IMG/VR virus record: IMGVR_UViG_3300050120_000152
Coordinates: 248,001 to 312,000 of that record
Direction: 5' to 3' (one strand)
Length of the DNA: 64,000 nucleotides
Shown here: positions 40 through 39,382 of the stretch, in pieces
Position numbering within the stretch: the stretch's first letter is position 1
Layout of the letters: every line of letters begins with the position of its first letter
Program-made: the position numbers and the translations under genes
Notes under the pieces: model-generated
The model's input: only the letters and a program-made list of their open reading frames with translations
Database searches by the model: none
Told to the model about the DNA's origin: nothing

Positions 40-1743
40 TTAATTCTTATAATGACGATTTTCTCTACGAGTTTTGCCATCGTAGTGATGTTTACGAAAA
101 TGGTTAATAGGTGATGCAAACAAACTACCCACTTTCATCTTTTTATCGAAAATATATTGACATGCCAAACTACTTAATGTTTGTTCAAATATATGTTCAT
201 ACATGTCAGATAAAAATAGTTGATAGTTTCCTTTCTTATTGAATAATAAAGGCCAATTAGAATAATGAAATTCTCCTACCGCATATGATACCCCCTTATA
301 GGCTCCTGTGTAGTATATCTTGGTTTTCCAGCGTAGCTCATCACTTCCTTTATCATCGGGGAAGATTTCATCGCGTCTATGACTGGCAACATTCTTATAG
401 CCCCAATTGAAATGACAATCGCCAAAGACTTCAGTATGATTCAGGCGTAAGAAATCAAGTTCATTGTCTTCTAGTATTTCAATACTCTTTTGGAATAATT
501 CTGGGATATAGCGTACAAATCCATTTTTACATGGTTGACCTTTGAATATTTTACCTGATGAACTTTCAGCATAATCAGCATCATTATCACCATCGTTAAC
601 CAAAAGCATGTCGTCCTCAAAGAAAACCATGTACTTATGTTCAGATTTATCAAAATGCTTGGCACAAAATACTCGGCCATCGTTGATACCAATATTCTCA
701 CCTTCATGAATAACTTCAAACCCATACTCAGTGAATAATTTTGTATATTCTTTCTTTACCTTGGGGTCAGTTGAGTTATTGACCACATATTTTTTATGTT
801 TATCAAATTCTTTTGGATATGCTTTTTTAAAGGCATCGGCCCACATAGTAAACTGTTTCGGTAAATTATAAGTTATGGCATAGAATGCTAATGGATATTC
901 TGGATCGGGAGCCGTTACTTTGTTGGTCTGTAAATTTTCAAAGAACTTATACACTAATCCATTACCTTCAATAAATCGTAGATTATATTTTTTAGGGTCG
1001 CGATAGGTTAATAAAGTGAAAATACTTTCTTCTGTCCCCATGTAACCTGCGTTTAATGTTTCATTCAATAAATGGTAATAATTATCGTTGAATGCATTAA
1101 TGGCATCCTTGTTGCCGCCAAATATACCACCACGACATACATATTCTGTGTTACATCCCGCATATTGATTCATGGCAGCTTTTTTGAACCCATGTACTTC
1201 AACTTGACCATCATAGGGAAAGGCCACGAACATCATTTTATTAAGATGTGGCGTTATAAGTTTCTCAAAATCTTGATTAAAATAGGCATCAAGATTTACC
1301 GTATTTGCTAACCCGCCGTCTACCCACAGAAAGTACTTTGATGAGAATGGATTCGTCAATGATGCGTCATTTAACATAAATTGCTTAGACATTACTAAGG
1401 GATTATACAATTCCAATTTTGCTTGTGTACTACCCGCAAGCCATCCAGCTTGACCTAACCAGTCAGAATTTATCCGTATTTCTTGAGTTTTATTATAAAA
1501 TGGAAATTTGCGTAAATCATCAAGAGTTTTAATAATAACGCTAGTATTATCACGTTTTCTATGTTGCCATACCAACTCTTCATATTGTGGTTCAATATAG
1601 ATAATCATAGGAAAATCTAATTTTAATAATTTAGTAAAACATTCGAGATAATGATCGAAGGGTCGTTTCATATCACTGTCCATTTCCCCACGGCCAATGT
1701 TGAAAAGTCCTGTACAGATGGTTAGGTTTTGTCTTGTATTCAT
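40..1743 (-). CDS. Bifunctional glycosyltransferase: N-terminal WlaTC/HtrL(YibB)-family domain plus C-terminal GT2/GT-A-like domain
   Basis: N-term TICTGLFNIGR, YNPLVMSKQFML, YFLWVDGG, GGIFGG, GTEESIFT are HtrL-type motifs; C-term has NIGINDGR and YMVFFEDDM (GT-A acidic motif). Confidence 0.75.
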   Translation of the reverse strand: MNTRQNLTICTGLFNIGRGEMDSDMKRPFDHYLECFTKLLKLDFPMIIYIEPQYEELVWQHRKRDNTSVIIKTLDDLRKFPFYNKTQEIRINSDWLGQAGWLAGSTQAKLELYNPLVMSKQFMLNDASLTNPFSSKYFLWVDGGLANTVNLDAYFNQDFEKLITPHLNKMMFVAFPYDGQVEVHGFKKAAMNQYAGCNTEYVCRGGIFGGNKDAINAFNDNYYHLLNETLNAGYMGTEESIFTLLTYRDPKKYNLRFIEGNGLVYKFFENLQTNKVTAPDPEYPLAFYAITYNLPKQFTMWADAFKKAYPKEFDKHKKYVVNNSTDPKVKKEYTKLFTEYGFEVIHEGENIGINDGRVFCAKHFDKSEHKYMVFFEDDMLLVNDGDNDADYAESSSGKIFKGQPCKNGFVRYIPELFQKSIEILEDNELDFLRLNHTEVFGDCHFNWGYKNVASHRRDEIFPDDKGSDELRWKTKIYYTGAYKGVSYAVGEFHYSNWPLLFNKKGNYQLFLSDMYEHIFEQTLSSLACQYIFDKKMKVGSLFASPINHFRKHHYDGKTRRENRHYKN

Positions 1744-5673: not shown

Positions 5674-7059
5674 TTAATTTTCAACTATTTTATCAATCTT
5701 CTTCAACCAATCCTTCGATGCGCTGTGTGGCCATACGGTATATGTCTTAGCAATGCGGTCGGGGGGTGACATGTAAATGAAGCGATAGTCGATCCATTCA
5801 CCTTTCAGATATTCCTTAATTTCTGATGCAGATAAATCTTTTCGATATATTTCAGAGCCATACTCATCATGGCACCCGACATAGCAGAAATCATAATCAT
5901 CTATAATCATGACATTACCTTGATCGTCTAAGGTATTAAGATCATTCTTATGAATGCAAACTCTAATATCGTTTGATCGGGAAATAGTGGATTTCCACTC
6001 TTCAGCAGAATCATAAGTCTTATATCCTGTTAACGTTGGTTCAGTACGATCTAAAACGCATTGCTGAACACCGCGATATTTAAATGCTACACCAGAAAAT
6101 TCTTCATAATCCTTTACTGTTCGTACAGTACCAAACCCATATTTACCAAAATCTATCTGAGATTGATCTTCACCATCCATACCAAATAAAATACGATTGC
6201 GCTTATGAGAATTAACATTCTTTTCCCACCAATCTTCAGATATTTTACCTTTCTGTTTTTGTTGGGTTGTATGGTCATCCCACACTTTTACGCGGCCTGC
6301 CCGTGTATATTCATGCCAACATACTACAATATTGGGATGATATAAATCATATCCATGAGTATAAGCTCTTACGCCGATGGATACTTCTTCACCATGGAAG
6401 AAAAATTGTGGGTCATGCTGAACTTCTTCGGCAAATATTCCATCAGCGAATGCAAAATGTGCTGAATAAAATCTTGCATGTATAGGTTTTGTGCGAGTTT
6501 TCCAATCATCTATTGTTGATGGTCTTGTAAAATGGGTGCCTTCGGGAATAAATCTATCAAAATCCATTTTCCACGGTTCCTGAATACGAGCAGCTGGATC
6601 ATTCTGTGGATCAAAAGAAGATACATAAGCCGTCAATAGAGGTTTCGGGCTTACATCTCTTACAGATTCTAGCATGTCAATCAATACAGTATCCCAGCCC
6701 TGTATGAATCTATGATGTGAATCTAATTGTAGGGTATATTTTTCTTTCTTATAATGCTGTTGTATTTTGTTTCTAGCCCAGCATGCCCCATTCGTTTTTA
6801 AATAATGCAAGTCGATTAATTCAATTGTTGCGCCGTTTAAGGTAAGTACGTGTACGTCATCATCTAAAACGGTTTCAGAATTTACTACATCAAATTTTTT
6901 ATCAAGAAAATCTTCAATAGTTTCATCTGCGCCATGTTGCCAGCAAACTACTGCGCGAATTAACTCAGGGTGGTTAGCATTATTGATTAGATCAGTTAAA
7001 GTTGGGATTAACTGGGGATCTCTATAACTAGCGATTTGTACGAAAATTGTGTTATCCAT
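5674..7059 (-). CDS. GT60-family (Skp1-hydroxyproline / polypeptide) alpha-N-acetylglucosaminyltransferase-like protein
   Basis: TIFVQIASYRDPQL, GACWAR, YTLQLDSHHRF (DSH motif), FFFHGEE, RAYTHGYDLYHP, YGFGTVRT. Confidence 0.85.
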   Translation of the reverse strand: MDNTIFVQIASYRDPQLIPTLTDLINNANHPELIRAVVCWQHGADETIEDFLDKKFDVVNSETVLDDDVHVLTLNGATIELIDLHYLKTNGACWARNKIQQHYKKEKYTLQLDSHHRFIQGWDTVLIDMLESVRDVSPKPLLTAYVSSFDPQNDPAARIQEPWKMDFDRFIPEGTHFTRPSTIDDWKTRTKPIHARFYSAHFAFADGIFAEEVQHDPQFFFHGEEVSIGVRAYTHGYDLYHPNIVVCWHEYTRAGRVKVWDDHTTQQKQKGKISEDWWEKNVNSHKRNRILFGMDGEDQSQIDFGKYGFGTVRTVKDYEEFSGVAFKYRGVQQCVLDRTEPTLTGYKTYDSAEEWKSTISRSNDIRVCIHKNDLNTLDDQGNVMIIDDYDFCYVGCHDEYGSEIYRKDLSASEIKEYLKGEWIDYRFIYMSPPDRIAKTYTVWPHSASKDWLKKIDKIVEN

Positions 7060-23340: not shown

Positions 23341-25497
23341 TTAAGTGAATACGCCGCCAATGTAAATACTAAAATCGCTAGTCTGCGTAATACAATCAAC
23401 GAGGTTATTCAGACCTATATCTACGAAAGTACTATCCATTATACCAACCGAAGTTAAACGTGCAATATAATTATGCACATGACTCCCTATTGCAGTGAAG
23501 TCGCCACCAATATAAATCTTACCATCAATAACTGTTTGATATAATATTTTAATATACCCATTTACATCTATATCTATAAATGATGAGTCGAGTGTGCCGT
23601 TAGAATTTAATTTCGTTAAATAATTGTAACTATTGGTTCCTGCTGCGGTGAAATCACCACCTACATAAATTTTTGCATCTGCGGTTTGAATGATTGAATA
23701 TACATCATTATTCAAATCTAAATCAGTAAATCCAGTATCAACGGTTCCATCCGAATTTAATCTAGCAATATAATTGCGTGGTATTGATCCAATAGAGGTA
23801 AAATTACCTCCCAAATATATTTTTCCATCCGCCGTTTGATAAATGCAATTAATAGTTGAATTAAAATCAATACTCATAAAACTAGTATCTAATGTTCCAT
23901 CAGAATTCAAGCGAGCAAGATAATTATATGGGATTGATCCAATTGAGCTAAATGATCCTGCAACATATATTTTACCATCAGCTGTTTGATAGATATAATT
24001 TAATGAATTATTAAAATCTATAGGCATGAATGATGTGTCTAATGTACCATCGTAATGCAGTCTTAGGATATAGGTATAAGATAATGAACCATGTGATGTA
24101 AAATTACCTATAACATAAATTTTGTTATCTGATGTTTGGATAATGTCAATAACTGTGCTATCAACATCTAAACTCACATAAGATGTATCTAATGATCCAT
24201 CATAATTTAATCGGTCGAACAATGCCCATGCTGGCGATGATGAATCGCCATTGAAGAATGCTCCCCCAAAATAAATCTGTCCATCGGTAGATTGTATGAT
24301 AGCGTCTACTTGACCATCCAAAGAAAGATTAGTATAACCACGATTTATCGTACCATCTATATTCAATTTAGTCATATAGCCAGCTGCAACAGGTGGGGTT
24401 GATGTTGGTGTAGGAGTTAATGTAGGACTTACTGTGATGGTTGGTGTAATACTTGGCGTAACTGTAATTGTGGGAGTAATACTTGGCGTGATCGTAATTG
24501 ATGGTGTTGGGGTTGGGGTTGGTGTTGGCGTAAGTGATGATCCCGGTGCAGGGGTTGCAGATGGGGTTATTGATGTTGTTGGTGTAATGGTACGAGTTAC
24601 GGTTGGCGTAGGTGTTAGTGTCCGAGTTACTGTTGGAGTTACTGATATTGATATTGTAATTGTTGGTGTGTTAGAAATTGTTGGCGTTACACTCGGTGTA
24701 TCGGAAATAGTTGGGGTAACAGTCGGTGCTGGCGTTGGAGTAGGTGTTTCGGTAGCCATTGGTGTAACTGTAATAGTTGGTGTTATTGATATTGATCCAG
24801 TGACCGATGGGGTAACTGAAATAGTCTGCGTGACTGTTGGAGTCATCGTTGGAGTTGCAGTAGCTGTCGCGGTCATAGTTGGAGTAATTGTTACAGTTTG
24901 TGTTACTGTCAATGTAACGCTTGGTGTAGGCGTTAAGCTTTGTGTCAATGACACACTAGGGGTCAGTGTATGGGTAGGTGTTGGTGTAGCCTGTGGTGTC
25001 TTAGATGGCGTCACAGATACTGTTGCCGTTGGTGTTAGTGTAGGAGTTGATGGTATTTCAGATGAGGTTGATGGAGTTGGTGTAGGAGTTGGAGTCAATG
25101 AGGTTGATGGAGTGATGTTTACTGGTACTAAGGGATCGAGTGCTGATCCAAAATATAATATATTTGCCGTGCCAGTGCAATTACCCAAACGACCAAAATC
25201 CAGCCATATATTATTACTATCAATATAATTTATAATAGGTTCTATTTTAGTTAAAATATTATTAATATCGTTGATGAAAACATTGATGAATAACTGATTA
25301 GAGTTATTTCCATGAAATATTTTCCAAATAGTTGCGGGAACCGTCTGAACATGCTGTGTAGCATGTTCAAATTGTTCAAAATTTTTATCGGTGTTTATTA
25401 CTCTACCTAAATTTTTATCTAATAATAATTTTTTATATTTACTAAATCCACCGGCTATAGGAGTCACTGATGTAGATGGTGTAATTAAGTCATTCAT
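23341..25497 (-). CDS. Probable virion fibre/appendage: long Thr/Pro mucin-like stalk plus delta-60 (DUF5122-like) beta-propeller
   Basis: About 245 aa TP tract, then about 7 repeats Q.DGKIYxGGxFT...YIARLNSDGTLDTSF. Confidence 0.75.
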   Translation of the reverse strand: MNDLITPSTSVTPIAGGFSKYKKLLLDKNLGRVINTDKNFEQFEHATQHVQTVPATIWKIFHGNNSNQLFINVFINDINNILTKIEPIINYIDSNNIWLDFGRLGNCTGTANILYFGSALDPLVPVNITPSTSLTPTPTPTPSTSSEIPSTPTLTPTATVSVTPSKTPQATPTPTHTLTPSVSLTQSLTPTPSVTLTVTQTVTITPTMTATATATPTMTPTVTQTISVTPSVTGSISITPTITVTPMATETPTPTPAPTVTPTISDTPSVTPTISNTPTITISISVTPTVTRTLTPTPTVTRTITPTTSITPSATPAPGSSLTPTPTPTPTPSITITPSITPTITVTPSITPTITVSPTLTPTPTSTPPVAAGYMTKLNIDGTINRGYTNLSLDGQVDAIIQSTDGQIYFGGAFFNGDSSSPAWALFDRLNYDGSLDTSYVSLDVDSTVIDIIQTSDNKIYVIGNFTSHGSLSYTYILRLHYDGTLDTSFMPIDFNNSLNYIYQTADGKIYVAGSFSSIGSIPYNYLARLNSDGTLDTSFMSIDFNSTINCIYQTADGKIYLGGNFTSIGSIPRNYIARLNSDGTVDTGFTDLDLNNDVYSIIQTADAKIYVGGDFTAAGTNSYNYLTKLNSNGTLDSSFIDIDVNGYIKILYQTVIDGKIYIGGDFTAIGSHVHNYIARLTSVGIMDSTFVDIGLNNLVDCITQTSDFSIYIGGVFT

Positions 25498-25521
25498 GTT
25501 CTATTTTCGGTTTAAATATAT

Positions 25522-28500
25522 TTATGTTGGTGTTGGAGTTAAGGTAATAGTAGGAGTTACTGTGACAGTAGCTGTTAATGTTGGTGTAATAGTAGGTGTT
25601 ACTGTGGCAGTAGCTGTTATGGTTGGTGTGATTGTAATAGTAGGAGTGACAGAGATTGTGGGTGTTATGCTTGGAGTGATTGTAATAGTAGGAGTGAGGG
25701 TGGGTGTTGGCGATGGAGTAATACCTACACCAGAAATAGCTTCATAATGTGCAAAAATACTATCATCGGTCAATGCTGCCCCATAAAATGAGAAATTATC
25801 TATTCCACCAACAAAATTGTTGATGCTTGGAATATAGAATGGTGAACCACCTATATTAATACCATAGGTATTTGAAAATAAATTATTTCCTGTAACTGGT
25901 ATGGAAGTTTCTTCTATACCATTCACAAAAATACACATTTCGTCATTCATTCTACGACATGTTATGACATAGGATGAACCATCTGCAGATGTAGTTGATT
26001 GTATTTCGGCGGCTGGGAAATCTGTGGTTGCTATTCTAAAAGCAAATTTTCCAGTCGATGGATCAATAGCTAATTGCATTTGTGGTTGTTGTGACGATGT
26101 ATTATATGGAATATACACCAACATTGGAATAGCAGCATGTTGCTCTGCAGTAGTAGCATTGGTAGTTATTTCAAAAGTAAAATCGCCCGGAATATCTAAG
26201 AAACTACCATATGTACCTAATACCATATTATTTTGAGTGAAGTCATTATTAAACAATATTGATCTTACCGATCCTGCAATCAATCCCGGCTCACCCAATG
26301 TTATATTACCATTATAATAACCATTATTGCCATATAGCGAACTATCTAACGCTGTAGATGTAGCTAAATCGTCAAACTTATAATAAACTAATGGATTATC
26401 ATTCATTACAGCAGAGTCATACATGCTGATAGGCACTGGTGATAATGTTGGTGTGATGGTTGGTGTAATAGTAGTAGTTATTGTTGGTGTAATTGTAGGT
26501 GTTGGTGTTGGAGTATTAGTTGCCATAGGTGTTGGAGTATTAGTTGCGGTAGGTACTGGTGTTCCTGTGGCTACTGGGGTTGTTGTAGGTGTGATAGTTG
26601 TTGTAGGTGTGATAGTAGTAGAAACTGTCAACGATATTGTTGGGGTTAGCGACGGCGTCACGGTTACGGTTGGCGTAATAGTTGTAGAAACTGTAATAGT
26701 AGGTGTTATACTTGGTGTTGGTGATGGTGATGGTAACGGTGGCTGTGTTGGAACTGCAATATTATCAGCAATATCACATGCTCCACCCGGAAGAATATTA
26801 TTGATAATAGTAGTAGGATTAATATCAGACACATTAACATTTTGTGAAACGTCAATAGCAACCCACGAAGTTTTGAAAAAATCTGCGCTATTTTTCTTCA
26901 AACTCATTGCATCATTAAATGCCGCAAAATAAATGTAGTTAATATTAGATATATCAAAATTATCATATATTACATACATGGTATTAACAATGTTATTAAT
27001 ATTATCAAAATTATTAATAGCTAAAAATGAGTTTATATCAATGTTTATAAAATCTTGTGTAGGATCATTTAAAATACTTTGAATGGTAGCCAAAGTTAAG
27101 CTAGATGATGTAAATATTTGTTCAACACCCATACCATATTTGGTATCAGTACCATAGATATTATCAAATAATATTCTATCTAATGTGGGTAACGTTATCG
27201 TAGTATCAATGATTTTATTAGAAACCGGGTATCCTACCAATGCTGATATTAATTTTTCCCATAGATATAGATCGATTTTCTGTGATTGATTTTTTCTAAA
27301 CATTTTCCATTCATAATGAACATTTTTTAATGCTAATGGTGATTTAACCGGATTTGTGGTTGAATAATCGTAAATATCACCATTTATTGGCATTCTATCT
27401 CTTAAAGTAAAATCACGAGTAAATCTAAGCGCATAACGATTATCATCATTTACTAAGCCCTTTAGACCGCGAATGATCATTTTATTGAATCTAGCAGGTA
27501 AATCGTAAGCTGCACCATCAAATACATCACCAAACACAATGCCATATCCATCATCATTGTAACGCATTCCCGATAATATCATATATGGGTTTGGGTTAGT
27601 AATCAAATCGGATTGCGCCTGTATGATTGTTGATTGATAATTGCTAGTATTAGTAATGGTTGTCGGTGAACCGTTTACCCAGAAATAATAATACGGTACT
27701 AATGCACCATTTGTATTGCTTACGACATAAGTGGTAGAGTATGGGGTATCATACTTATAAACCATATTGGTAATGTCATCAGCGGTGGGGATAGGTGCAG
27801 GTAGCACTACTGTAATATAATCTTGTATATCAGGTTTATTGATCTGTCCCGGTAATAGTGCACCATACATATAATCGTAAAAATTATATAGTGTTAAATC
27901 CACACTCAAATCATATGTACCGTTACGATATATATTTACACTTCCTGAGAATGGAACTACGGTGGTTGTTTGAATTAATGCAGCTAATATACTAAATCGT
28001 TGATCTGAAACTTGATTCCAATTAGGATTTGTTATAGAGCCTTCATTATAATATAGGTTAACTATTGGGGTACCAGAGTTTGGATACTGCGAAGTATACT
28101 CTGATGGAGGGACTAAAGATTCCGTCCATTGATATAAGTTCAGTTTACCAATATTCGATAATTTACCCCAATTAGCTATTCTATCATTAATATTAGGAAA
28201 TACGCCATGATCAAAATATGGGATATAATCAAGTTCAGTAGTATCCATCCAAACTTTACCAGCTTTATATTTTAACCATACATCATTATAAATATTTCCT
28301 GTAAAATCAATTGAATAGGTTGCTGGATCATATGCAGTCTTTATGTCAACTAACGAATAGGCATATTGATCATGTTGATTTAATGCGGGATTCCATATAG
28401 CAATTTGGTTAACGATTACGCCCGCAGTCTTATCTACAAATACTGAAGAATTTTGCGCATTATAGTTATAGATCAAACAACTTATTTGGACATTATTTAA

Positions 28501-31500
28501 TATAGTTGGATCGGTCGAGAACACCACAACTTGATTATTGATCATGGTATAATCTTGCTGATTAACTAATGATTTAGTATTCCCATTGGCATCCAAATAT
28601 GTAATGATAACGCCATCATAAATATCACCCAATGATAATATAATACGAGAATTTATATATAATAAATCGCTTTCCTGTAATGATATAATTTGTTTTACTG
28701 ATGCATTAAAGAAATATGATTGATTGGGGGCTATTTTATTTAATACATCGGGCTGATCCCACCATCGGGTATTATCGGTTAAAGCAATTCCAGTAAACGT
28801 ATCATCTAATGCATTTTCATCTGGTGCAATAAACTCTGCTCTAAACTCTGCTCCTATAGAATCGGAACGTTTTAATTTTAATTCAATATAATCTTTTTCT
28901 TTAGAATCGCCAAATCTAGCTAATTTATATACCCAGAATTCATCTAGAGTGGCTTTATTAAACAAGCTTTGGTTAGTATAGGCATCTATAGCTAAGTTTG
29001 TGCCTTTATTCTTAATCATACCACGCCAAAAAATGAAATCAGATTTTGAATTTACATTCAAGTCCGCCATATAATCTGATTGACCAGAATATCCCAAAGA
29101 CTTTCTTACTTCTTTAATTAAGGGTTTAGATTCTAATACGTTATAGGTATCATACATGTAACGTAAATCGGTCACTGCAGATTCAAAGTTTTGCATTAAA
29201 TCATCATTATGTATAATGAATCCGCCTGTATTTGGTCTTAATGTCATTCCGGGCTGGCGATTGAATTCTACAAAGAAACGTGGAGTTCTTAAACCCAAGA
29301 AAGAATCATATATTAAATTGTTTGAAACGGAATAATTATTTAAGGATAAAATATGTTCATATGCATCAATGAAAGCATGTATTCCGGCAATATATGATGG
29401 AAATGCTGAAATGGTATTTGATATAATTTGTTCGTTCGTTAATGATATTTGACTATATTCATCATGACGAAGTACCATCAATTTATCATGCGTTAACATT
29501 TGACCATACTGATTATATATTCTTTGATTAGTTAAAATATCATTACGATCATTACCTATCACATCAGATAAAATACCTTGACTATGATTTATACGCATAG
29601 CTTTTTTATAAGGATTTATTAAAAATTGTGGGTAATTTATTTGAGGTCTATAAATTTTGAATGATGATATGCCCGATCCTGATGTACTAAATGGTATAAA
29701 GATGCCCGCTAATGCATCGGAATTGGTATAAGCTAACTGAAAACCCATTCCATCAGATGATGGAATGACATAATAAGGAACGAACTGCTTTAATGGATTA
29801 TCAAATGGTTGTGGTAGTATTGAAGCATCAGATGCTGTTATCACTACTCGTTGCGCTTTATTGATTTGTGCACTAGGAATTGAAACATTAGAATCAGTAT
29901 ATAGAAATCGACTATTTACATAATCAGATTTTATTTGATATTCAAGATCGGTAGTTTGTTGTGATGTTGAAAGGACGTATAACCAATCGATAAAATATTC
30001 TATTTCTAATTGCCAATCATTTAATCTTCCAGTATTAGGATCAGAGTTATCAATGTCTTCCGTCATTGTTGAGAACCCGATGCTTGCTAGATAATCGGAA
30101 TATCCATCAATAAAATCTATCATTTGTTGTATATTTGTAATATACAACGGTTGAGAGGCATTTATAATGGTTCTAGTATCTGAGTAATGCTTTCTCCATG
30201 AGGTATTAACAGCATTTCCACCCAATGCTTTGAAGGTGGTTTGAATACGTCCTACAAATGGTGCAGATAATGATGTAGTCAAAGGTGTTATAGCACCCTT
30301 ATTAGCTAAAGCTGCATCAGGATTATTACTCAAGGAAAATGAATAATTATCCAATCTAATAAGATAATATGGAATGAATTCGTTAAATGGTGCAGGTAAT
30401 GCCGTATCAGTTGTTAAATATAATTCGGTTCCCGTTACCCAATCATCAGGTAATGTTCTACGAACAGATGGATAGATTTGCCCATCTATGGTATCAGAGG
30501 TTAAAGTTATAGTTTCATTGACAAATATTTTTGTTGATGAGTTAGCAATATCATAATAAATTGATTTTATTGTGTATGTACCGTTGAACTGTGTCGAATG
30601 GTTGATGACAAATGAAGTTCCTTCGACAAATGAAGTTGTTAAATTACCACTCAAATCAAAATATTGTTGGAATAAAAATCCAGTGTTAATAGATGCTGAT
30701 ATACCAGCATAATTATCATGTAAAGTAGAAAATAGACCATTATCATTGATGGTGATAGTTGTGTTTGCCTGAATGACGATATTTCCGTTACTTAAGTAAG
30801 CTGATGCCGCCGTACCTAATTGGTCATTCAATGTTATAATAGCTGCACTAATTGTAGGAGCATTAGTAGTATTTAATGTTAATATAATTGAATCAGAGCC
30901 GATACTAATTGATGCGGTATATGACATTGTACCAATATAGTTAGTCGAATTACTTAAATCAGCAGTTTCACTATAATTTATAGTTGAAATAGTAGCAGGG
31001 GTAGCAATACCAGCATCAATAATATCATATACGGAAATTTCAAATACCGGATTGCCAGTCAAAGATTTAAACCCAAAGTTTTCTTTTGGATAATATAAAA
31101 TATTGGTATTTGTGGGCGATGTTGATCCAAATTGTACTGTCCACCCTGTACCTAAATTACGTGTTTTTGAATATTTTGATGGTGAATTTAATACAGTACC
31201 AATCAATGAATCAAAACTTATATCATTGAATCCAAATGTTTTCTTTACATTTATTGTATAATCTTTGTTTGTAATATCAAAATTTTCATTATCGATATTT
31301 AAAGATGGGGTATCAATATATGAACCTATTAGATAGGATAGTTGGGTATCCCATGTTTTCCAATATGATCTGAATTGTGATGCCTCGCCATCATAACCAT
31401 GATATCTATTATAATTAATGTACCATTGATTTAAGCCGTTAGAATAGAAAGCTTTTCCATTAGCATCAATGTCACCATGGAAAATAGTATCTTTATGAGA

Positions 31501-34500
31501 AAATACTCGTTTTGTGGTATCATCTACATTTAAGCAATTTATCTTTTGTAATTTATTACCATTAAACGTCTCATAATTAAAATTAATAGGATCAATCTTA
31601 AATGATACTATCATCTGATCGTACAAATATTGCGCAGAAGTCTTCCATTCCCATTCATTGGGGTTTCCATCACCAAATGTATAATCTACATTTGGTGTGA
31701 TAATTTCCTGATTTAAATTGGCATCATATGGTGTTCTAATTTTTGCGGCCGTAGTATTCGCACTATTCCAAAAGGGTGGTAATAAATCATCAGGATTATA
31801 ACCATCTAATGTAGGAGTAGCTGCCATATTTACTGGTATGTAAAGATATGTTATTCCAGCTTGGCCTACTAATCCAGAGGACATATTACCATTAGGTAAT
31901 ATTTTACCTGACGGTACTGTACCATTGATAATATTGTTCCACATGAAACCATTCCAATGTCTTATACCAGTATTGTCGTGGTATATAGAATCCCACCATG
32001 TTGGTTTATCTTTATAATTTTGTAATTTCCACGGCTCAAGGTTTGGATATGGGGTTTGGTATAATTTGGTGTACAAACTTTGGTAGCTAGATGCTAAATC
32101 ATGTGACACGTTTCCTGTAACTGGATGTTCTTGAATTGTTGTAAATTCATAGTTCCATGTAAATGCATTGTTTGTTCTGAAATATGTATTCGTCAATGGA
32201 GTAGCAATATTACTATATGATGCCCATGCCCCAAATTGAGTGGCATTTAAATTTATAAATCTATTATTTGTATTATTTGTAGTAGCGTCATATATTAAAT
32301 TATCGTATATTGGACAAGCATCATACAAATTCTGTTCAACTTGTAACATGACATTAGCTAATATTTGATGGAAATCTACCAATTCCCATATAGTTGAAGT
32401 TGCTAATCTATATAATTTTCTAGTTTTTGCAACTGTATTAACACGAATTATTAAACTCCCAAATGACACGCCATTTGGAAATGGCGTGTCATCTGACGAG
32501 ACGGTTTGCTGAATTATACTAACCTGTTGTAATAATGTAGCAAAAAATAATTGAATTACTGATGGTTGAAGAATAATGTCCTGAATATGTCCATCATGGC
32601 ACGATACGGCATTTAGTTTTAATTTATCGTCAAATAAAGTGTAACAAACTTTCTTTTCAGCTAAACCAAAATAGGGAAGTGTTGCAACCCAATTTTCCAT
32701 ACCAACGCCAGTAGATTGATTATAAGTTGTGCTATCGCCAAACCATTCATTAAATTTTTCGTTTGATTTGTAAATGGTTATTAACAAATTATTTAAATAT
32801 GTTTGAAAAGATGATAGCGATGTATATGAAGTTTGATTTACTAATGATGATACAATATTTTTTATATATTCTTCTTGAATGAAATTATATCCATTTAAAT
32901 ACTGATCATGGCCGAATTGTATCAATTGTAGCGGGTTTACATTATTAACTAATGTAGATGATATAGATAAATCCATCCCATTATTATGTTCTTTAATTGT
33001 ACCACCTAATCCATAATTTATATTATCACTTAAATGAATTTGATTGATGTTTGTAGAATTTGGCACCCCCGGTACTTTTTGTGCTAAAATAATACTATTA
33101 AAATGTGATAGACATTCAGACAAATTAATATCTGATCTAAGTTGATGATCAATATTATAATACCATGGATTAGGCAATTCCCATGAACCATCAGCTAATA
33201 ATTGTGGAACATATTGCTCATTGTTTAATCCACGTTTCCATATAGTTTGCAATGGATAATTTGGTTGTGAAAAGTTTTTATATGAATATAATTCACCTGT
33301 ATCTGGATTAGATAGTTCTTGTACAAACCCATAATCATTCGTTAATGTATTATTGACGATTCGCTTAAGAATATAATTATTAACGGGATAAGTTTGATCT
33401 TCACGATATGTAAATATTCGCGATGCTATGGTTTCGGCCTTTCCTTCTACATCATATACAGTAAACCAAGGGTAAATATTAGTGGTATCCTTGCTTTGTT
33501 CAATTTTTCTAAATGATGTTATATTCAACAATTCATACGGAATCGTAGGGTCTACTAGGTTAGCATTAGTAACCATAGTTACAGCACGACGGCCAATATC
33601 ACTCAAAGCATATTCGCCCAGTTCAATACGGAGTAAATCATCTTTACCTAACGATACTGATTGGTCAAAAATGATAGTACCGACATAATCAGGGTAAATA
33701 TCGGATCGGCTATCTTGATAATTACCGTATTGACGAATATTATTAATATACACCCGAAGATCGCCTTCCTGATAGTCATCATAAAGAACTAACTGATGTA
33801 AGGAATTGTCAAATCTAATAGCAACACCAATATTATAATCATTTATATAAGAGAATGTCTGCCACATCAAACCGACATTGGTTTCATAACCTGCTCCTAT
33901 ATTAGAATAGGATGTTACGAAGACTTGTAACATGGGGTTAGGTACTGGTGCAATACTTGTTGCAGATACATCTTTAACACCGTAGAACATCCAATGTTTA
34001 TCATAACCCAACCATTGATCACCGGCTACTGTTTTTTCTGGCCCAACGGAAGACCCAACCGGAATATCAAATGGATTTGCTATATTCACCGTTAATGTTA
34101 TATAGGATTGATACATTGAGTTAGGAGTTTGCTGGGTATAGGCTACATTGGATACGACATAATATCCATTATTACCTACTGTACCCGATATCTTTATTCT
34201 TGAACCAATGGCAATATCATTGGTAACATTACCTAATGAGGGTGCCAATAAAATAGTATTTTCAGTTACAAAAATATAAGCCGGATTCAATGGATCGATA
34301 TTAGTGATATCTGAAATTTCAAATAATGTTGGTTCGAAAATAGTGTCGGAATAGATGTTAGATGTTAATGTTCTATATTTCCAATTATAAGTCGTTAATG
34401 ACGTTGTAGATAGCTCTAGGAATGGATCGAACTCTATGATAGGTAGTTGTGCGCGAATTTTACCAGAGAATGACTGTAACTCATTCTTATGAACCCACTG

Positions 34501-36021
34501 ATTGCTTGCTGACCATGGATCGGTTTGCGTTAATGACAATTTATATCGTTGATGTGCCGCTTCAACTAATAATGAAATATGATATACTTGTGGCACCCAA
34601 TCGTGTCCAGACCATTGCATAATTACATCATTCACCGAATCTATCCATATTTGATAGATTGTGGGGAACGATGGCGCAGTTGCACTTACGAGATAATCAT
34701 ATATGGTTTGTCTTACGATAGTGTAATGTAAATCTTCTTTAGTGAACATACGAATAGCGGCATCAACACCAATAAAATTATGTTGCACGGAAATAATGGT
34801 ATATGATCCGCTATTAGCACCATTAGTTAATTGTAAAATATCTCCCGGTCTGATTTCATTTGTAATAAAATCATAAGTAGTATCGTATATACCATGATTA
34901 CCTAAGAAAGAATACCCGTTGGTTGAACTCAATAACGGCAAATTCCTATCCCAGATTAATGATCCTAAATTGATATCATTCCACATGGAATTATATTGAA
35001 TAATAGAATCATCTGTGATGGAATTATATTCAGCATCCGCCAATGATGCCATAGGCATCATTGAAATTGTATGCCATGCGTCTGCGGCTGCAACAAGTTG
35101 ATTTACTATAATCTTTGTACTATTAGTAGAAACATTGAAGGTTGATGTAGTAGTAGACCATAACGTATCATAAATGATATTAGATTTGGTTAAAAATATA
35201 TAATCTTTAGTAAATATTTCACTTAAATCTCCCGCAACTATGAATGAATTATCATTACCTGTAGACAATATAGATAATCCAAAATTACACATTCCGGTGA
35301 ATGTACTTCCATCCATATTATTCAATACACTAATTTGTGTTAAGCCTGTGGTAGGATTTAATGATATGGATGATATTTGATTAATCGCTGAGCCTGTAGT
35401 ATTGTTGTTTTGAGTCAATAATATATAATCATATGCCTTGAAAGACGATAAAATGTTTCCTTGGACAGTTATGTTAAAAGAATCGAGTTGGGTAACCGCA
35501 AATACTGGATTGACCTTGTTTATAGTATTTTTATATTCTGTACTTCTACCCAATGCCCAATTAGTTTCATTTTTTATGGTTATATAATCGGGAACATCAT
35601 TAATATTGGGAGAATTCCAATAATAGTCTTGATAATTAATTAATTTATCAATGTCGATAGGTGGCGCATAGTTAAATTGAAGAGTTTTACCCCATTCATT
35701 AAATTGGGTAATATCTACATCAAGTCTAGACAAACGTTGTAAATAATCTTGAAAAGTTAAATATGCTGTTTCGGAACCTACGGCAACAGATGCCACCGGC
35801 TGTAACTGTTCAGTCTGACGATAAATTGTTTTTTCTATGATTTGCTTTAATGGATTATTTGGATCAACATCACCGATAATACCAACAACATGTTGGTATT
35901 CATCCTTTGTTAAAAAACGATTGAACAAATTTTCATTTATATTTTTAAGAAAAGCCGACTGAAGTTGCGCTGGCAGATAATCATTTAAATTTGTTCGTTG
36001 CTTTGTGTAATCACTCATCAA
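25522..36021 (-). CDS. Giant baseplate wedge protein (3499 aa) with C-terminal TP tract, LamG-like domain, TP tract
   Basis: Follows gp6-like gene; N-term PPIDIDKLINYQDYYW; FFKTSW near end of core; NPLVYYKFDD...GGIDNFSFYG.AL LamG-type domain. Confidence 0.75.
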   Translation of the reverse strand: MMSDYTKQRTNLNDYLPAQLQSAFLKNINENLFNRFLTKDEYQHVVGIIGDVDPNNPLKQIIEKTIYRQTEQLQPVASVAVGSETAYLTFQDYLQRLSRLDVDITQFNEWGKTLQFNYAPPIDIDKLINYQDYYWNSPNINDVPDYITIKNETNWALGRSTEYKNTINKVNPVFAVTQLDSFNITVQGNILSSFKAYDYILLTQNNNTTGSAINQISSISLNPTTGLTQISVLNNMDGSTFTGMCNFGLSILSTGNDNSFIVAGDLSEIFTKDYIFLTKSNIIYDTLWSTTTSTFNVSTNSTKIIVNQLVAAADAWHTISMMPMASLADAEYNSITDDSIIQYNSMWNDINLGSLIWDRNLPLLSSTNGYSFLGNHGIYDTTYDFITNEIRPGDILQLTNGANSGSYTIISVQHNFIGVDAAIRMFTKEDLHYTIVRQTIYDYLVSATAPSFPTIYQIWIDSVNDVIMQWSGHDWVPQVYHISLLVEAAHQRYKLSLTQTDPWSASNQWVHKNELQSFSGKIRAQLPIIEFDPFLELSTTSLTTYNWKYRTLTSNIYSDTIFEPTLFEISDITNIDPLNPAYIFVTENTILLAPSLGNVTNDIAIGSRIKISGTVGNNGYYVVSNVAYTQQTPNSMYQSYITLTVNIANPFDIPVGSSVGPEKTVAGDQWLGYDKHWMFYGVKDVSATSIAPVPNPMLQVFVTSYSNIGAGYETNVGLMWQTFSYINDYNIGVAIRFDNSLHQLVLYDDYQEGDLRVYINNIRQYGNYQDSRSDIYPDYVGTIIFDQSVSLGKDDLLRIELGEYALSDIGRRAVTMVTNANLVDPTIPYELLNITSFRKIEQSKDTTNIYPWFTVYDVEGKAETIASRIFTYREDQTYPVNNYILKRIVNNTLTNDYGFVQELSNPDTGELYSYKNFSQPNYPLQTIWKRGLNNEQYVPQLLADGSWELPNPWYYNIDHQLRSDINLSECLSHFNSIILAQKVPGVPNSTNINQIHLSDNINYGLGGTIKEHNNGMDLSISSTLVNNVNPLQLIQFGHDQYLNGYNFIQEEYIKNIVSSLVNQTSYTSLSSFQTYLNNLLITIYKSNEKFNEWFGDSTTYNQSTGVGMENWVATLPYFGLAEKKVCYTLFDDKLKLNAVSCHDGHIQDIILQPSVIQLFFATLLQQVSIIQQTVSSDDTPFPNGVSFGSLIIRVNTVAKTRKLYRLATSTIWELVDFHQILANVMLQVEQNLYDACPIYDNLIYDATTNNTNNRFINLNATQFGAWASYSNIATPLTNTYFRTNNAFTWNYEFTTIQEHPVTGNVSHDLASSYQSLYTKLYQTPYPNLEPWKLQNYKDKPTWWDSIYHDNTGIRHWNGFMWNNIINGTVPSGKILPNGNMSSGLVGQAGITYLYIPVNMAATPTLDGYNPDDLLPPFWNSANTTAAKIRTPYDANLNQEIITPNVDYTFGDGNPNEWEWKTSAQYLYDQMIVSFKIDPINFNYETFNGNKLQKINCLNVDDTTKRVFSHKDTIFHGDIDANGKAFYSNGLNQWYINYNRYHGYDGEASQFRSYWKTWDTQLSYLIGSYIDTPSLNIDNENFDITNKDYTINVKKTFGFNDISFDSLIGTVLNSPSKYSKTRNLGTGWTVQFGSTSPTNTNILYYPKENFGFKSLTGNPVFEISVYDIIDAGIATPATISTINYSETADLSNSTNYIGTMSYTASISIGSDSIILTLNTTNAPTISAAIITLNDQLGTAASAYLSNGNIVIQANTTITINDNGLFSTLHDNYAGISASINTGFLFQQYFDLSGNLTTSFVEGTSFVINHSTQFNGTYTIKSIYYDIANSSTKIFVNETITLTSDTIDGQIYPSVRRTLPDDWVTGTELYLTTDTALPAPFNEFIPYYLIRLDNYSFSLSNNPDAALANKGAITPLTTSLSAPFVGRIQTTFKALGGNAVNTSWRKHYSDTRTIINASQPLYITNIQQMIDFIDGYSDYLASIGFSTMTEDIDNSDPNTGRLNDWQLEIEYFIDWLYVLSTSQQTTDLEYQIKSDYVNSRFLYTDSNVSIPSAQINKAQRVVITASDASILPQPFDNPLKQFVPYYVIPSSDGMGFQLAYTNSDALAGIFIPFSTSGSGISSFKIYRPQINYPQFLINPYKKAMRINHSQGILSDVIGNDRNDILTNQRIYNQYGQMLTHDKLMVLRHDEYSQISLTNEQIISNTISAFPSYIAGIHAFIDAYEHILSLNNYSVSNNLIYDSFLGLRTPRFFVEFNRQPGMTLRPNTGGFIIHNDDLMQNFESAVTDLRYMYDTYNVLESKPLIKEVRKSLGYSGQSDYMADLNVNSKSDFIFWRGMIKNKGTNLAIDAYTNQSLFNKATLDEFWVYKLARFGDSKEKDYIELKLKRSDSIGAEFRAEFIAPDENALDDTFTGIALTDNTRWWDQPDVLNKIAPNQSYFFNASVKQIISLQESDLLYINSRIILSLGDIYDGVIITYLDANGNTKSLVNQQDYTMINNQVVVFSTDPTILNNVQISCLIYNYNAQNSSVFVDKTAGVIVNQIAIWNPALNQHDQYAYSLVDIKTAYDPATYSIDFTGNIYNDVWLKYKAGKVWMDTTELDYIPYFDHGVFPNINDRIANWGKLSNIGKLNLYQWTESLVPPSEYTSQYPNSGTPIVNLYYNEGSITNPNWNQVSDQRFSILAALIQTTTVVPFSGSVNIYRNGTYDLSVDLTLYNFYDYMYGALLPGQINKPDIQDYITVVLPAPIPTADDITNMVYKYDTPYSTTYVVSNTNGALVPYYYFWVNGSPTTITNTSNYQSTIIQAQSDLITNPNPYMILSGMRYNDDGYGIVFGDVFDGAAYDLPARFNKMIIRGLKGLVNDDNRYALRFTRDFTLRDRMPINGDIYDYSTTNPVKSPLALKNVHYEWKMFRKNQSQKIDLYLWEKLISALVGYPVSNKIIDTTITLPTLDRILFDNIYGTDTKYGMGVEQIFTSSSLTLATIQSILNDPTQDFINIDINSFLAINNFDNINNIVNTMYVIYDNFDISNINYIYFAAFNDAMSLKKNSADFFKTSWVAIDVSQNVNVSDINPTTIINNILPGGACDIADNIAVPTQPPLPSPSPTPSITPTITVSTTITPTVTVTPSLTPTISLTVSTTITPTTTITPTTTPVATGTPVPTATNTPTPMATNTPTPTPTITPTITTTITPTITPTLSPVPISMYDSAVMNDNPLVYYKFDDLATSTALDSSLYGNNGYYNGNITLGEPGLIAGSVRSILFNNDFTQNNMVLGTYGSFLDIPGDFTFEITTNATTAEQHAAIPMLVYIPYNTSSQQPQMQLAIDPSTGKFAFRIATTDFPAAEIQSTTSADGSSYVITCRRMNDEMCIFVNGIEETSIPVTGNNLFSNTYGINIGGSPFYIPSINNFVGGIDNFSFYGAALTDDSIFAHYEAISGVGITPSPTPTLTPTITITPSITPTISVTPTITITPTITATATVTPTITPTLTATVTVTPTITLTPTPT

Positions 36022-36083: not shown

Positions 36084-38978
36084 TTAAAATTGTTGAAGCA
36101 TAGAAGGAGTCAGTGAAGTTACTATGTTAATATTATCTACTGATATACTTGGTTGAATAATTTCATTTTCCTTTGCATATACTTGAAACATATCACCGAA
36201 TATATGTGTGTTATAGGTTGGGACTAACACAATGGAACTTATATCATTTGGTAATGTAGTATGAATGTATGTTGCAAGTTCGGTGAAATAAAATGTTTGA
36301 CCAAATTCCCATTGATTGATATCAAAATATGCGTTGATAGCGTCTACAATAGCGGTCTTTACCTGATTATTGGTAAGTGTTGTATTTTGTGATCTTATAA
36401 CCTTAAACGATGCTTGCAAGGTGTTATTTGCGTTAGCACCAAATAATACTTTAATACTCCCCGAATGTAATATAATCTCATCACTAATCATTTTACTTTG
36501 TAGTAAATATCCATAATCATTTTTCAATTCAAATGGGGTAGGTGGGGTAGGTTGAATTAATATTTGCCCTGTTAACCATTGACGTAATAAATTATAATAT
36601 CCACGAGTAATTATATACGAATCTATTATATTCGATGGTGCCGGGTCAACCAAATGATAACGGGGTGTTCTATGCATCCATAAGAAATTGATATTCTCTC
36701 TACCCATCTCAACTTTCCATAGATTGGTACCAGCAGTTTGATCGGCATTATAGGATGCTACAGTAGCTGTCGAATATGGGACATATGACCATTCACATCC
36801 TGATACACACGCTCTATTAAAGTACACTAGTGTAGCCGGGGATATCAAATAAGATAATGTGACATAATCTGGTATACCATCACCATTAATATCGCCCGGT
36901 AATAATATTAGATCATTGATACTATCTAACCCTTTATTTTCACCTGTTTCATAGACATATTGACTAACAACATTTAAATTATAATTAGTAGTTAGTATAT
37001 GGTTATTTGGATCAGTGTTAGCAGATAAAACTACAATTTGGTCATAATTACCATTTAAAGTATCATAAGTGATAGTTTTAGCTTCAGTATTGGTAATCCA
37101 AAAATCCAATCCACTACTATGCATAATAACGCGTTTAGCTAGAAATTGTATATCCCAATAATAATCAGTTTGTGACTCTATAGAAATCCAATAACTTTGT
37201 GGTACTGTTAGCGAAACCTGCCATGTATTAGTAGGAACATCGTAGTTTAAATAAACTGTTTGTGGTAATGCATTAACCGCGTTAGATAATGCAGCCTGTA
37301 TTTGCATGGCTTCCAGTGTAGTAAATTGTGTGCGGATAAGTTGGGGTATAACACCAAATAGTAATGATTTTGTATAAAATTCATCTGTTGATAAAATAGG
37401 TTGAATATAGTTTGTAACCAATGCCATAGTTAAATTAACATTAGCGCCAAAATCTGGAGCAGGTAATGATCCGGGTGCTATTAACTTATCAACGGAATAA
37501 CTATTAAAATATATAACACCATCATCAGAAAACATTTTTACATTATCATAATATTCTCGTGGATCATGCCATTCAATATATTTTGAATCACCGGCAAATG
37601 TTCTATTAATAGCTCGTAATTTTAATATAGAATTATCTTGTAACATGAATTGATTATAATCTTGACCATTAACCATACGATCTTGAGTATAATATGCTGC
37701 TGGTGCTATTCTTCGGATATGTTCTATATCTTCTGATGGTGAAGCATTCTGGATAGAATCAACAAGTGAAAACGCAAATGTTAGTGTTTGTTTTTTGCCA
37801 TTATTGTCAGCATAGGCGATACTATTTGACATATTTTGAATAGCATTAGCAGGAATGACGGCATCACTATTTGCCGATATTCTTGACCATATTTCAAATG
37901 ATCCAGATGGAATAGCTGCGAAATTACCGTCACCAAATACTAATCTAAATTCATCATTATCTAAGGTTTCAATTTCATACTTATTCATGTTAGTATTAGT
38001 ATTGAAAATAATGTTTTGACCGTTGGCTACGTCAACCTGCATCCACTCGCCTGCACGAAGAGTACTACTACCATCGCCAACAATAATAGCACCATTAGAA
38101 TCGATATTATTTAACCATACGTCAGTATTATTAGAATTTTCTATCAAAACATCAAATGTTTGGTTTGGTGTTACACCATCAAATACAGTTGTAGTGCGCT
38201 GTAACTTCCCCTGTTTTGTAAAGAAAAAGAATCCAGTATTATCGGAGGCGTCACCAAGACCATCTGAAAGATATAGAATATTCGTACCTAAATTCTTTTC
38301 AGGCCGTTTTTCGTAAGGCCCATTAACATCCAATGATGCACTAACCAATTCCATTGGATAGGTAACCCCAGATACGTTTATATTATATGATATTACATTG
38401 TTATTTAATGGGTTATTATTTAATCCATAGAGTTCAAACACCACATCTTGTACTTGAATGCGATCTGATGGTAAAACTGAACCAAAATTTTGTGCTAATA
38501 CTCGATTGAGGACAATGAGAAATTGATCTTTCCATTGAGAATTGTTAGGATCATTCCATAAAATAGTAATATTGGTTAAATTATTACCACGAGAATCAAA
38601 TACCGATTCGGTAGTCGATATAGATGTAATTTTTACTAAACCTCTAGCTGGAATATTACGCGATGCATTGTATGATAATAATTTAGCTAATCGCAATACA
38701 GATTCTTTTCTATCTGCTTGAGTAACAATATTTTCGTGAGCATTCATATCTTGTCGATATGCTATCAATTCACCAACATAAGCAAATAATTCTAATATAG
38801 CAATAAGTTCTGAAGATTCAATATAATCATTAAAATCTTCTTCAGGATAATATAATTTCAAATAGTCAAGTAATGACTTTTTGATGCTATCAAAATCCCA
38901 AGCAGTAAAATTAATTTGTTGGAAGGCTGTGTAAGCCATTTCCCATGTTTCTGCTCGGTTAATTACTCTGGCTACCAT
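36084..38978 (-). CDS. Baseplate wedge subunit (gp6-like)
   Basis: DFDSIK..L..Y, FNDYIESS, ESVLRLAKL.SY, FGDG.F..IP, EDIEHIR..AP, TQDRMV..QDY. Confidence 0.88.
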   Translation of the reverse strand: MVARVINRAETWEMAYTAFQQINFTAWDFDSIKKSLLDYLKLYYPEEDFNDYIESSELIAILELFAYVGELIAYRQDMNAHENIVTQADRKESVLRLAKLLSYNASRNIPARGLVKITSISTTESVFDSRGNNLTNITILWNDPNNSQWKDQFLIVLNRVLAQNFGSVLPSDRIQVQDVVFELYGLNNNPLNNNVISYNINVSGVTYPMELVSASLDVNGPYEKRPEKNLGTNILYLSDGLGDASDNTGFFFFTKQGKLQRTTTVFDGVTPNQTFDVLIENSNNTDVWLNNIDSNGAIIVGDGSSTLRAGEWMQVDVANGQNIIFNTNTNMNKYEIETLDNDEFRLVFGDGNFAAIPSGSFEIWSRISANSDAVIPANAIQNMSNSIAYADNNGKKQTLTFAFSLVDSIQNASPSEDIEHIRRIAPAAYYTQDRMVNGQDYNQFMLQDNSILKLRAINRTFAGDSKYIEWHDPREYYDNVKMFSDDGVIYFNSYSVDKLIAPGSLPAPDFGANVNLTMALVTNYIQPILSTDEFYTKSLLFGVIPQLIRTQFTTLEAMQIQAALSNAVNALPQTVYLNYDVPTNTWQVSLTVPQSYWISIESQTDYYWDIQFLAKRVIMHSSGLDFWITNTEAKTITYDTLNGNYDQIVVLSANTDPNNHILTTNYNLNVVSQYVYETGENKGLDSINDLILLPGDINGDGIPDYVTLSYLISPATLVYFNRACVSGCEWSYVPYSTATVASYNADQTAGTNLWKVEMGRENINFLWMHRTPRYHLVDPAPSNIIDSYIITRGYYNLLRQWLTGQILIQPTPPTPFELKNDYGYLLQSKMISDEIILHSGSIKVLFGANANNTLQASFKVIRSQNTTLTNNQVKTAIVDAINAYFDINQWEFGQTFYFTELATYIHTTLPNDISSIVLVPTYNTHIFGDMFQVYAKENEIIQPSISVDNINIVTSLTPSMLQQF

Positions 38979-39001
38979 TTTGATCCTGAAATTAGTCTAA
39001 T

Positions 39002-39009
39002 TATTTATA
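39002..39009 (-). promoter_or_regulatory. Late promoter TATAAATA (gp6-like)
   Basis: Exact consensus overlapping the gp25 stop codon. Confidence 0.65.
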
Positions 39010-39382
39010 CGGAGCTACTAGCAAAATTAATTTGTATACTCATTTGATCGCTATAATTCAAATAAGTATAATATACATCGGCAAATACCATCAAAGCATT
39101 TTGATCATATAATGGAATGACTCGCAAATCTTGTAATTGTACGCGAGGCTCATTTTTAAATACTGTGGTGATATCTTCTTCAACTATATACACCGTAGTA
39201 TCATCCAAGGGATCAAACATAAGATCGGGAATGCTGGTGCCATAATTAAACATCATCACACGTTCCCCTCGGCGAGTGTAAATATTATTAAGTATATCTT
39301 GTTTAATAATATCCACATTTCGCATTATCAAATCTTTATTATACTGATATTGTAATGATGAAAATCCAACGTATGCGTCCAT
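39005..39382 (-). CDS. Baseplate wedge gp25-like protein
   Basis: IKQDILN.IYTRRGERVM..YGT.I..LMFDPLD, EPRV. Confidence 0.92.
   Translation of the reverse strand: MDAYVGFSSLQYQYNKDLIMRNVDIIKQDILNNIYTRRGERVMMFNYGTSIPDLMFDPLDDTTVYIVEEDITTVFKNEPRVQLQDLRVIPLYDQNALMVFADVYYTYLNYSDQMSIQINFASSSV

Follow-up and report, generated by a model that had tools for sequence, protein, structure and literature searches.

The window analysed here is a 64,000-nucleotide stretch (bases 248,001-312,000) of the 340,344-bp record IMGVR_UViG_3300050120_000152, an uncultured XacN1-like jumbo phage. It encodes a giant virion structural protein of 3,499 residues, whose C-terminal appendage is composed of a threonine/proline (Thr/Pro) tract, a LamG domain and a second Thr/Pro tract that runs directly into the stop codon, and it also encodes a glycosyltransferase of the GT60 family. 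We found that Thr/Pro tracts of this kind were essentially confined to phages that bear GT60. On balance, we favour the reading that the tracts, including the terminal one, are acceptors of this enzyme and, once glycosylated, stand as mucin-like stalks on the outer proteins of the virion.

Anatomy of the C-terminal appendage

The conserved core of the giant protein ends at the motif FFKTSW, in which K-T-S was invariant in an alignment of nine orthologues. The motif is followed by a junction of 35 residues with a conserved cysteine (C3082) at the border between the core and the appendage, and tract 1 then opens with PSPSPTP, which is kept in XacN1, RAS14 and Xoo-sp13. The initial annotation of this DNA had described the end of the protein as FFKTSW, a Thr/Pro tract, a LamG domain and a final tract reaching the stop codon; this anatomy proved to be exact, with tracts of 111 and 68 residues and a TAA stop (Table 1).

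Both tracts revealed a strict period of two, with P/I/V/S/L/A at the positions that alternate with threonine. In tract 2, one phase was 88% Thr and the other contained none; Pro made up 38-45% of the non-Thr phase in the tracts. Charged (D/E/K/R) and aromatic (F/W/Y) residues were absent from both, and the combined Thr and Pro content was 63%, compared with 10.6% in the proteome (binomial tail 3e-25 for tract 2 and 4e-40 for tract 1). The tracts therefore have the composition of mucin-like acceptors, which are long, rich in Thr/Ser and Pro, low in complexity and uncharged. Tandem Repeats Finder detected just 2-3 copies with 63-88% identity in the tract DNA, indicating that the tracts are not fresh or clean tandem repeats. 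When a linker is taken to be a segment joining two folded domains, tract 1 is one, as it connects the core to LamG, and tract 2, which ends at the stop, is not.

The TAA stop of the giant gene is genuine under the code of the genome, in which stop usage was ordinary for the standard code (TAA 238, TGA 96, TAG 17). The downstream gene starts 8 codons past this TAA in the same frame, with an in-frame TAG in between. Because this second stop separates the two genes, tract 2 is the encoded C-terminus. A fusion of the giant gene with the downstream gene by read-through or recoding was considered and is excluded by the two stops and the standard-code stop usage.

The domain between the tracts matched the Laminin_G_3 profile PF13385 (E 7.3e-10; 39.6 bits against a cut-off of 27.6) over profile positions 15-150 of 151. 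An Atlas feature search returned LamG with a score of 0.98; 22 of the 30 matches fell in Laminin_G_3 clusters, and the ten best all belonged to the same family or clan. The domain was 54-63% identical in the three nearest relatives (L027, L030 and L055). A PDB search with the LamG profile found nothing, and an AlphaFold2 (AF2) prediction of the 452-aa C-terminal segment from a four-sequence alignment had a mean predicted local distance difference test score (pLDDT) of 34, with partial strands only, at residues 234-328 of the segment. The LamG module is probably for binding.

Distribution of the tracts and GT60

Matches to a nucleotide pattern encoding TPTxTPT were counted over whole records, with reversed patterns as controls, which gave 0-1 matches. 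As evident from the results, the pattern was present in 26 of the 28 GT60-bearing genomes or contigs, which represent two lineages, and in one of the 14 that lack GT60. The supposition that would have undermined an acceptor role, equal occurrence of the tracts in phages without the enzyme, thus did not hold. Ten GT60-bearing members of the giant-protein clade (G000, G004, G007, G012, G049, XacN1, RAS14, Xoo-sp13, G001 and G029) had 19-90 matches each, and 16 of the 18 further GT60-bearing contigs had matches. No TPTxTPT match occurred in RsoM2USA, G042, G016-18 or G046/47, in which no GT60 was found (the last five are fragments), nor in six other GT60-lacking jumbo or T4 phages totalling 2.2 Mb.

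GT60 itself was found in four of 50,697 cultured phage records, all XacN1-like, and on 564 IMG/VR contigs. A second GT60 group, with 45-48% identity, included five complete genomes (152-297 kb) without the giant protein, which are among the 18 further contigs and contain 4-59 pattern matches. In one of these genomes, consecutive large proteins contain as many as nine tracts apiece, and a single protein is tract-ended.

The genome to which the window belongs has 16 open reading frames (ORFs) with such tracts, most of which carry them between domains. Those that could be named are DUF285 repeat proteins, DUF5122 propellers, a PKD protein, a lysozyme-bearing hub protein and the giant protein, and the tract-bearing proteins as a group look like outer or fibre-like parts of the virion. 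Another protein of this genome (genome 239755-240657) likewise ends in a bare tract, of 50 residues. A fibre-like family was also observed (window 23341-25497, minus strand; genome 227958-238002 and 22722-25688), in which a small N-terminal domain is followed by a Thr/Pro tract and then by either DUF285 repeats or a DUF5122 beta-propeller. The member at genome 232641-234797 appears to open with a tract of 40 residues at the N-terminal end, provided that translation begins at the first start codon.

The GT60 enzyme and glycan cassette

The GT60 gene matched PF11397 with an E of 1e-76 (259 bits against a cut-off of 21) over profile positions 1-350 of 352. Its motif D113-S-H115, a DxH in place of DxD, was invariant in 35 GT60 homologues, and a DxH metal-binding motif is common to GT27 and GT60 (PMC7185993). 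The GT-A catalytic fold was closest to those of polypeptide O-glycosyltransferases. These results support the view that the phage GT60 is structurally a mucin-type polypeptide O-glycosyltransferase, and its fold points to a polypeptide acceptor. [quoted passage not shown]

A beta-rich C-terminal domain (GT60 residues ~340-461) is conserved and lies outside both the Pfam profile and the matches to polypeptide N-acetylgalactosamine (ppGalNAc) transferases; it occupies the place of the ricin-type lectin domain in GT27 enzymes. In two phages, an 897-aa protein consists of two GT60 domains in tandem (G012:C1:22242-24563 and G022:C1:38136-40457), and neither phage has the carbamoyltransferase or a tract on its giant protein. 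Two GT60 homologues with 60-65% identity (P0024 and P0080) were found on one 108-kb contig filed under Paraherbaspirillum soli, which may be a phage contig in a bacterial assembly.

A Nol/NodU-like carbamoyltransferase adjoins GT60 in the window, as in XacN1 (ORF333/334) and most GT60-bearing kin, and the glycan cassette as a whole, which includes an HtrL-like protein, is kept in XacN1 as ORF330-334. Purified XacN1 virions contain at least two glycoproteins that stain with periodic acid-Schiff (PAS), with the identity of the bands not reported, and the authors proposed the phage's own transferases ORF328 and ORF334 as their source (PMC5852040). We found that ORF334 is the GT60 of XacN1. No literature linking GT60 with phages or with Thr/Pro tracts was found, although coverage of the literature was incomplete.

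C-terminal architectures across the family

We compared the C-terminus with those of 51 related loci from IMG/VR and four cultured orthologues. The conserved core ended at the same motif throughout, and the downstream part was highly variable. In 22 loci and RsoM2USA there is no appendage, and the stop lies at most 40 residues past the motif. In particular, the expectation that orthologues in GT60-lacking phages end near FFKTSW was borne out: RsoM2USA ends 14 residues past the motif, and the other GT60-lacking relatives end 13-40 residues past it.

A bare Thr/Pro tract leading to the stop was found in L028/29 (265 residues), L032/33 (250-267), L034/36 (87), L035 (56) and L049/50 (68), and RAS14 has an almost bare end, with a 55-residue tract and 16 further residues. 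In the rest of the loci, tracts are followed by unrelated modules. Bare terminal tracts on this protein thus occur in at least five lineages among GT60-bearing kin; this recurrence, with lengths of up to 267 residues, argues that they are at least tolerated in the long term. The longest tract seen, of the Thr/Pro type and ~970 residues, belongs to the L046 orthologue (IMGVR_UViG_3300049846_001486).

The nearest relatives, L027, L030 and L055 (70-72% core identity), have the same layout of tract 1, LamG and tract 2. Beyond this layout they carry a further module, and, judged from the aligned sequences, the free end in the window looks like their architecture minus the last module. The 160-aa Cys-rich knob of L030 (L030:11960-12463) shared 56% identity (E 5e-63) with the C-terminal domain of a different tract-linked protein in the window genome itself (genome 46113-47474; L005:6113-7474), which indicates that distal modules are exchanged across tracts between carrier proteins. 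The appendage is thus a site of rapid exchange of tracts and swappable modules. A Hint/intein-like reading of the Cys-rich knob was dropped, since Pfam gave no match on the paralogous proteins. In L049-L054, L058, L059 and L062, the last ~120 core residues and the appendage are encoded in a separate short ORF of 214-623 aa, so that the giant gene is split or interrupted just before its end.

Identity of the giant protein

The middle part of the giant protein matched phrog_10938, annotated as a virion structural protein. Residues 503-3082 (2,580 aa) showed ~40% identity to XacN1 ORF325 and to the proteins of Xoo-sp13, RAS14 and CM1, and the homologue in RsoM2USA was 28% identical. More distant relatives were found in PA5oct, Atu_ph07, SCTP-2 and others, and the PA5oct homologue is flagged as detected by electrospray ionisation tandem mass spectrometry (ESI-MS/MS). 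The gene order is gp25-like, gp6-like, the giant gene, a tract-bearing propeller gene, gp15 and the tail-tube genes. Gene order, phrog_10938 and the PA5oct mass-spectrometry flag support its assignment to the virion proteins encoded in the baseplate module.

The narrower label of baseplate wedge, which the initial annotation had used, is one that we infer from synteny alone. Like the wedge initiator gp7 of T4, the giant gene sits right after gp25-like and gp6-like wedge genes. Unlike gp7, to which it has no detectable sequence relationship, the giant protein is three times longer, and an hhalign comparison of a nine-sequence family profile with T4 gp7 detected no homology (probability 0.2%). 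PDB sequence searches with the giant protein and with its gp6-like neighbour gave nothing usable.

Proposed mechanism

The anatomy, the family and fold of the enzyme and the co-distribution are shown by the data, whereas the acceptor role of the tracts, the sugar and the role of the free tail are inferred. The giant protein is a structural component encoded in the baseplate module of a jumbo myovirus of the XacN1 type. The phage GT60 would most likely add N-acetylglucosamine (GlcNAc) to the threonines of the tracts, in the cytoplasm and during assembly; modification or extension of the sugar may be the task of the neighbouring Nol-like carbamoyltransferase and HtrL-like protein. Once glycosylated, the tracts would be stiff, hydrated stalks that resist proteases. 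The terminal tract may then be a stalk with an empty end, from which a Cys-rich knob has been lost, or a sugar-bearing whisker at the rim of the baseplate. In Dictyostelium, the protein PsA carries GlcNAc on PTVT repeats.

Alternative explanations

Co-distribution and the fold of the enzyme favour the acceptor role that the initial annotation had proposed; the following observations weigh against it. When a tree was built from the last 1,000 residues of the core, the GT60-bearing genomes all fell into one clade (support 99), which means a single state change, one independent pair and no statistical power; within the giant-protein clade, the link between GT60 and tracts is a single retained co-acquisition and not a statistical correlation. 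The second GT60 lineage, which may or may not have gained both traits independently, adds weight. Four GT60-bearing relatives (L048, L067, G012 and G049) have no tract on the giant protein, although the complete genomes G012 and G049 have many tracts on other proteins. The carbamoyltransferase was not upheld as a strict partner of GT60, being missing in G012 and G049 and present in the GT60-lacking RsoM2USA. G050, which has no GT60, contains 14 pattern matches, all in one 550-bp stretch of pure (TP)n, and so a Pro/Thr stretch can exist without the enzyme. Moreover, Pro/Thr linkers without glycosylation are widespread. The single repeat of G050, the only GT60-lacking relative with matches, lies at G050:C1:224095-224648, close to the homologue of the giant gene.

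The main rival treats the tracts as unmodified extended linkers and recombination joints, with GT60 serving otherwise and the terminal tract being a roleless remnant of the loss of a knob; we consider this unlikely, but it has to be taken seriously. The claim that the terminal tract links nothing stood in so far as tract 2 ends at the stop, but L027, L030 and L055 go on past tract 2 into a Cys-rich knob of 55-160 residues, so that the free end here may be a recent loss and the tract a linker minus its cargo. Four different C-terminal architectures within one tight subclade, the knob that L030 shares with another tract-linked protein as a sign that modules move across tracts, the interdomain position of the tracts in most of the 16 tract-bearing proteins and the (TP)n stretch of G050 all fit this rival as well. 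Unmodified linkers would, however, leave unaccounted for the absence of tracts from 13 of the 14 GT60-lacking phages and their presence in two GT60-bearing lineages, as well as a fold that points to a polypeptide acceptor. Additionally, bare tracts of up to 267 residues persist in several lineages, although internal stops would be harmless there.

A different target within the same tracts is conceivable, since GT60 includes the Skp1 hydroxyproline transferases and Thr is thus not the sole possible target. Here Pro would first be hydroxylated by a 2-oxoglutarate (2OG)-Fe(II) oxygenase, and the resulting hydroxyproline would receive GlcNAc from GT60, as in the Skp1 Gnt1 branch of this family. 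The founding member of PF11397 is, according to the family description, the Skp1 hydroxyproline GlcNAc-transferase, which is cytoplasmic like the phage GT60; Pro is frequent in the non-Thr phase; and a 2OG-FeII_Oxy_3 gene (genome 66182-66508, E 1.7e-11) keeps this route possible. We nevertheless regard it as improbable, as the oxygenase gene is 190 kb away from the GT60 cassette and belongs to a family common in phages for other reasons, and it is Thr in every other position, not Pro, that is strictly conserved in the tracts. It is also quite improbable that the tail is a sugar-independent, self-associating element that pairs with neighbouring subunits or another virion protein as a fibre or latch. 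An uncharged two-residue period with a Thr face and an I/V/P face is the pattern of an amphipathic extended strand, and several copies of the protein per baseplate are probable, but a Pro at every 4-6 residues argues against regular sheets, the tracts of kin range in length from 56 to ~970 residues, AF2 gave no confident structure and the GT60 link is left unexplained. An artefact of assembly collapse or sequencing error in low-complexity, metagenome-assembled DNA is very improbable: the region is compositionally repetitive, but its DNA is no clean repeat, past the stop come ordinary intergenic DNA and then the beginning of the syntenic downstream gene, bare terminal tracts occur on independent contigs, and the record has direct terminal repeats and a completeness rating of 100%.

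Comparison with known systems

The closest cultured system is that of XacN1 ORF325 and its counterparts in Xoo-sp13, RAS14 and CM1, which share with the window the order gp25, gp6-like and giant gene, the junction of a conserved Cys followed by PSPSPTP, and a GT60 that is 58-61% identical and located beside a carbamoyltransferase. In contrast, the PT tracts of XacN1 and Xoo-sp13 are short and are accompanied by Cys-containing repeats and an end domain of 110 aa, and none of the four has a LamG domain or a tract reaching the stop. The window genome is also AT-rich (34.7% GC) and uncultured.

The tracts resemble the dense, uncharged Thr/Pro acceptors of the animal and protist systems of GT27 ppGalNAc-transferases and GT60 polypeptide alpha-GlcNAc-transferases (PMC8724618, PMC7185993). 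Unlike in those systems, the enzyme in the window is phage-encoded and has neither a signal nor a membrane anchor, and it must therefore act in the bacterial cytoplasm; its C-domain is unrelated to the ricin lectin domain of GT27 that it replaces.

In bacterial and fungal glycoside hydrolases, extended Pro/Thr linkers of low complexity, which often bear O-glycans, separate a catalytic module from a binding module. Tract 1 matches such a spacer, whereas tract 2 has no following module and the strict two-residue period is unusual for such linkers. The mycobacteriophage transferases involved in virion glycosylation are not known to belong to GT60. Capsid and tail-tube subunits of mycobacteriophages are described as glycosylated at their C-termini by phage-encoded transferases (PMC12619734, summarising Freeman et al. 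2023). Compared by that description only, they differ from the present case in phage, host and carrier, with short ends instead of long (T-x)n tracts on ~16 proteins.

Gene calls and neighbouring features

Table 1. Features of the window discussed in the text (window coordinates)
Feature	Position	Strand	Details
Giant virion structural protein	25522..36021	-	3,499 aa; conserved core aa 1-~3088, variable C-terminal appendage aa 3089-3499
FFKTSW motif	26863..26880	-	aa 3048-3053; marks the end of the conserved core
Thr/Pro tract 1, (T-x)n	26425..26757	-	aa 3089-3199, 111 aa, 44 T, 26 P; joins core to LamG
Laminin_G_3/ConA-like domain	25729..26424	-	aa 3200-3431, 232 aa; PF13385
Terminal Thr/Pro tract 2	25525..25728	-	aa 3432-3499, 68 aa, 30 T, 13 P; ends at TAA
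TAA stop of giant gene	25522-25524	-	
GT60-family glycosyltransferase	5674..7059	-	461 aa; no signal peptide or membrane segment; DSH (DxH) motif; extra beta-rich C-terminal domain
Nol/NodU-like carbamoyltransferase	2642..4972	-	PF16861, PF02543, phrog_1601; adjoins GT60
HtrL_YibB-like protein	40..1743	-	567 aa; PF09612 E 3e-17; 54% identical to XacN1 ORF330; part of conserved glycan cassette
gp6-like (964 aa) and gp25-like (125 aa) baseplate wedge genes	36084..39382	-	phrog_10646/219 E 2e-289, phrog_261, PF04965; directly upstream of giant gene
Downstream gene	23341..25497	-	718 aa; 120-aa N-terminal domain, ~250 aa Thr/Pro tract, DUF5122 beta-propeller

The listed start of the giant gene, a TTG at 36021, is probably one codon too early, as the ATG one codon on (36018) matches the N-termini of relatives better. 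The plus-strand ORFs at 24434-25228, 25391-25747 and 26423-26932 are not genes; like the strong GC skew (0.31) at 24-26 kb, they arise from the ACN/CCN codons of the minus strand. A TnsA-like endonuclease gene (18949-19434, minus strand; PF08722, E 7e-21) lies amid the tail genes and is possibly a homing-type mobile element. No near-identical DNA was found in cultured phages.

Implications

Very few cases of glycosylated phage particles are known, and to our knowledge mucin-type O-glycosylation is regarded as a eukaryotic trait. Extending the acceptor reading beyond this genome, we put forward, as a tentative proposal held with some doubt, that a widespread group of environmental phages (564 IMG/VR contigs from at least two lineages, and the XacN1-like isolates) may run their own cytoplasmic mucin-type O-glycosylation. 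The (Thr-x)n tracts of at least a dozen virion proteins would be coated by GT60, in many cases together with a Nol-like carbamoyltransferase, and free-ending tracts would be functional baseplate whiskers for adhesion or protection and not leftovers. The reading is directly testable, since XacN1, Xoo-sp13, RAS14 and CM1 are cultured and XacN1 virions have already been sugar-stained.

If the tracts are indeed substrates of GT60, a large and common group of jumbo phages would build mucin-like stalks on the host-recognition apparatus with a protist-type enzyme, and GT60 together with (T-x)n tracts would be a simple genomic marker for glycosylated virion proteins. This would bear on the adhesion of phages to hosts, biofilms and particles, on the protease resistance of their fibres and on the origin of GT60 and GT27.

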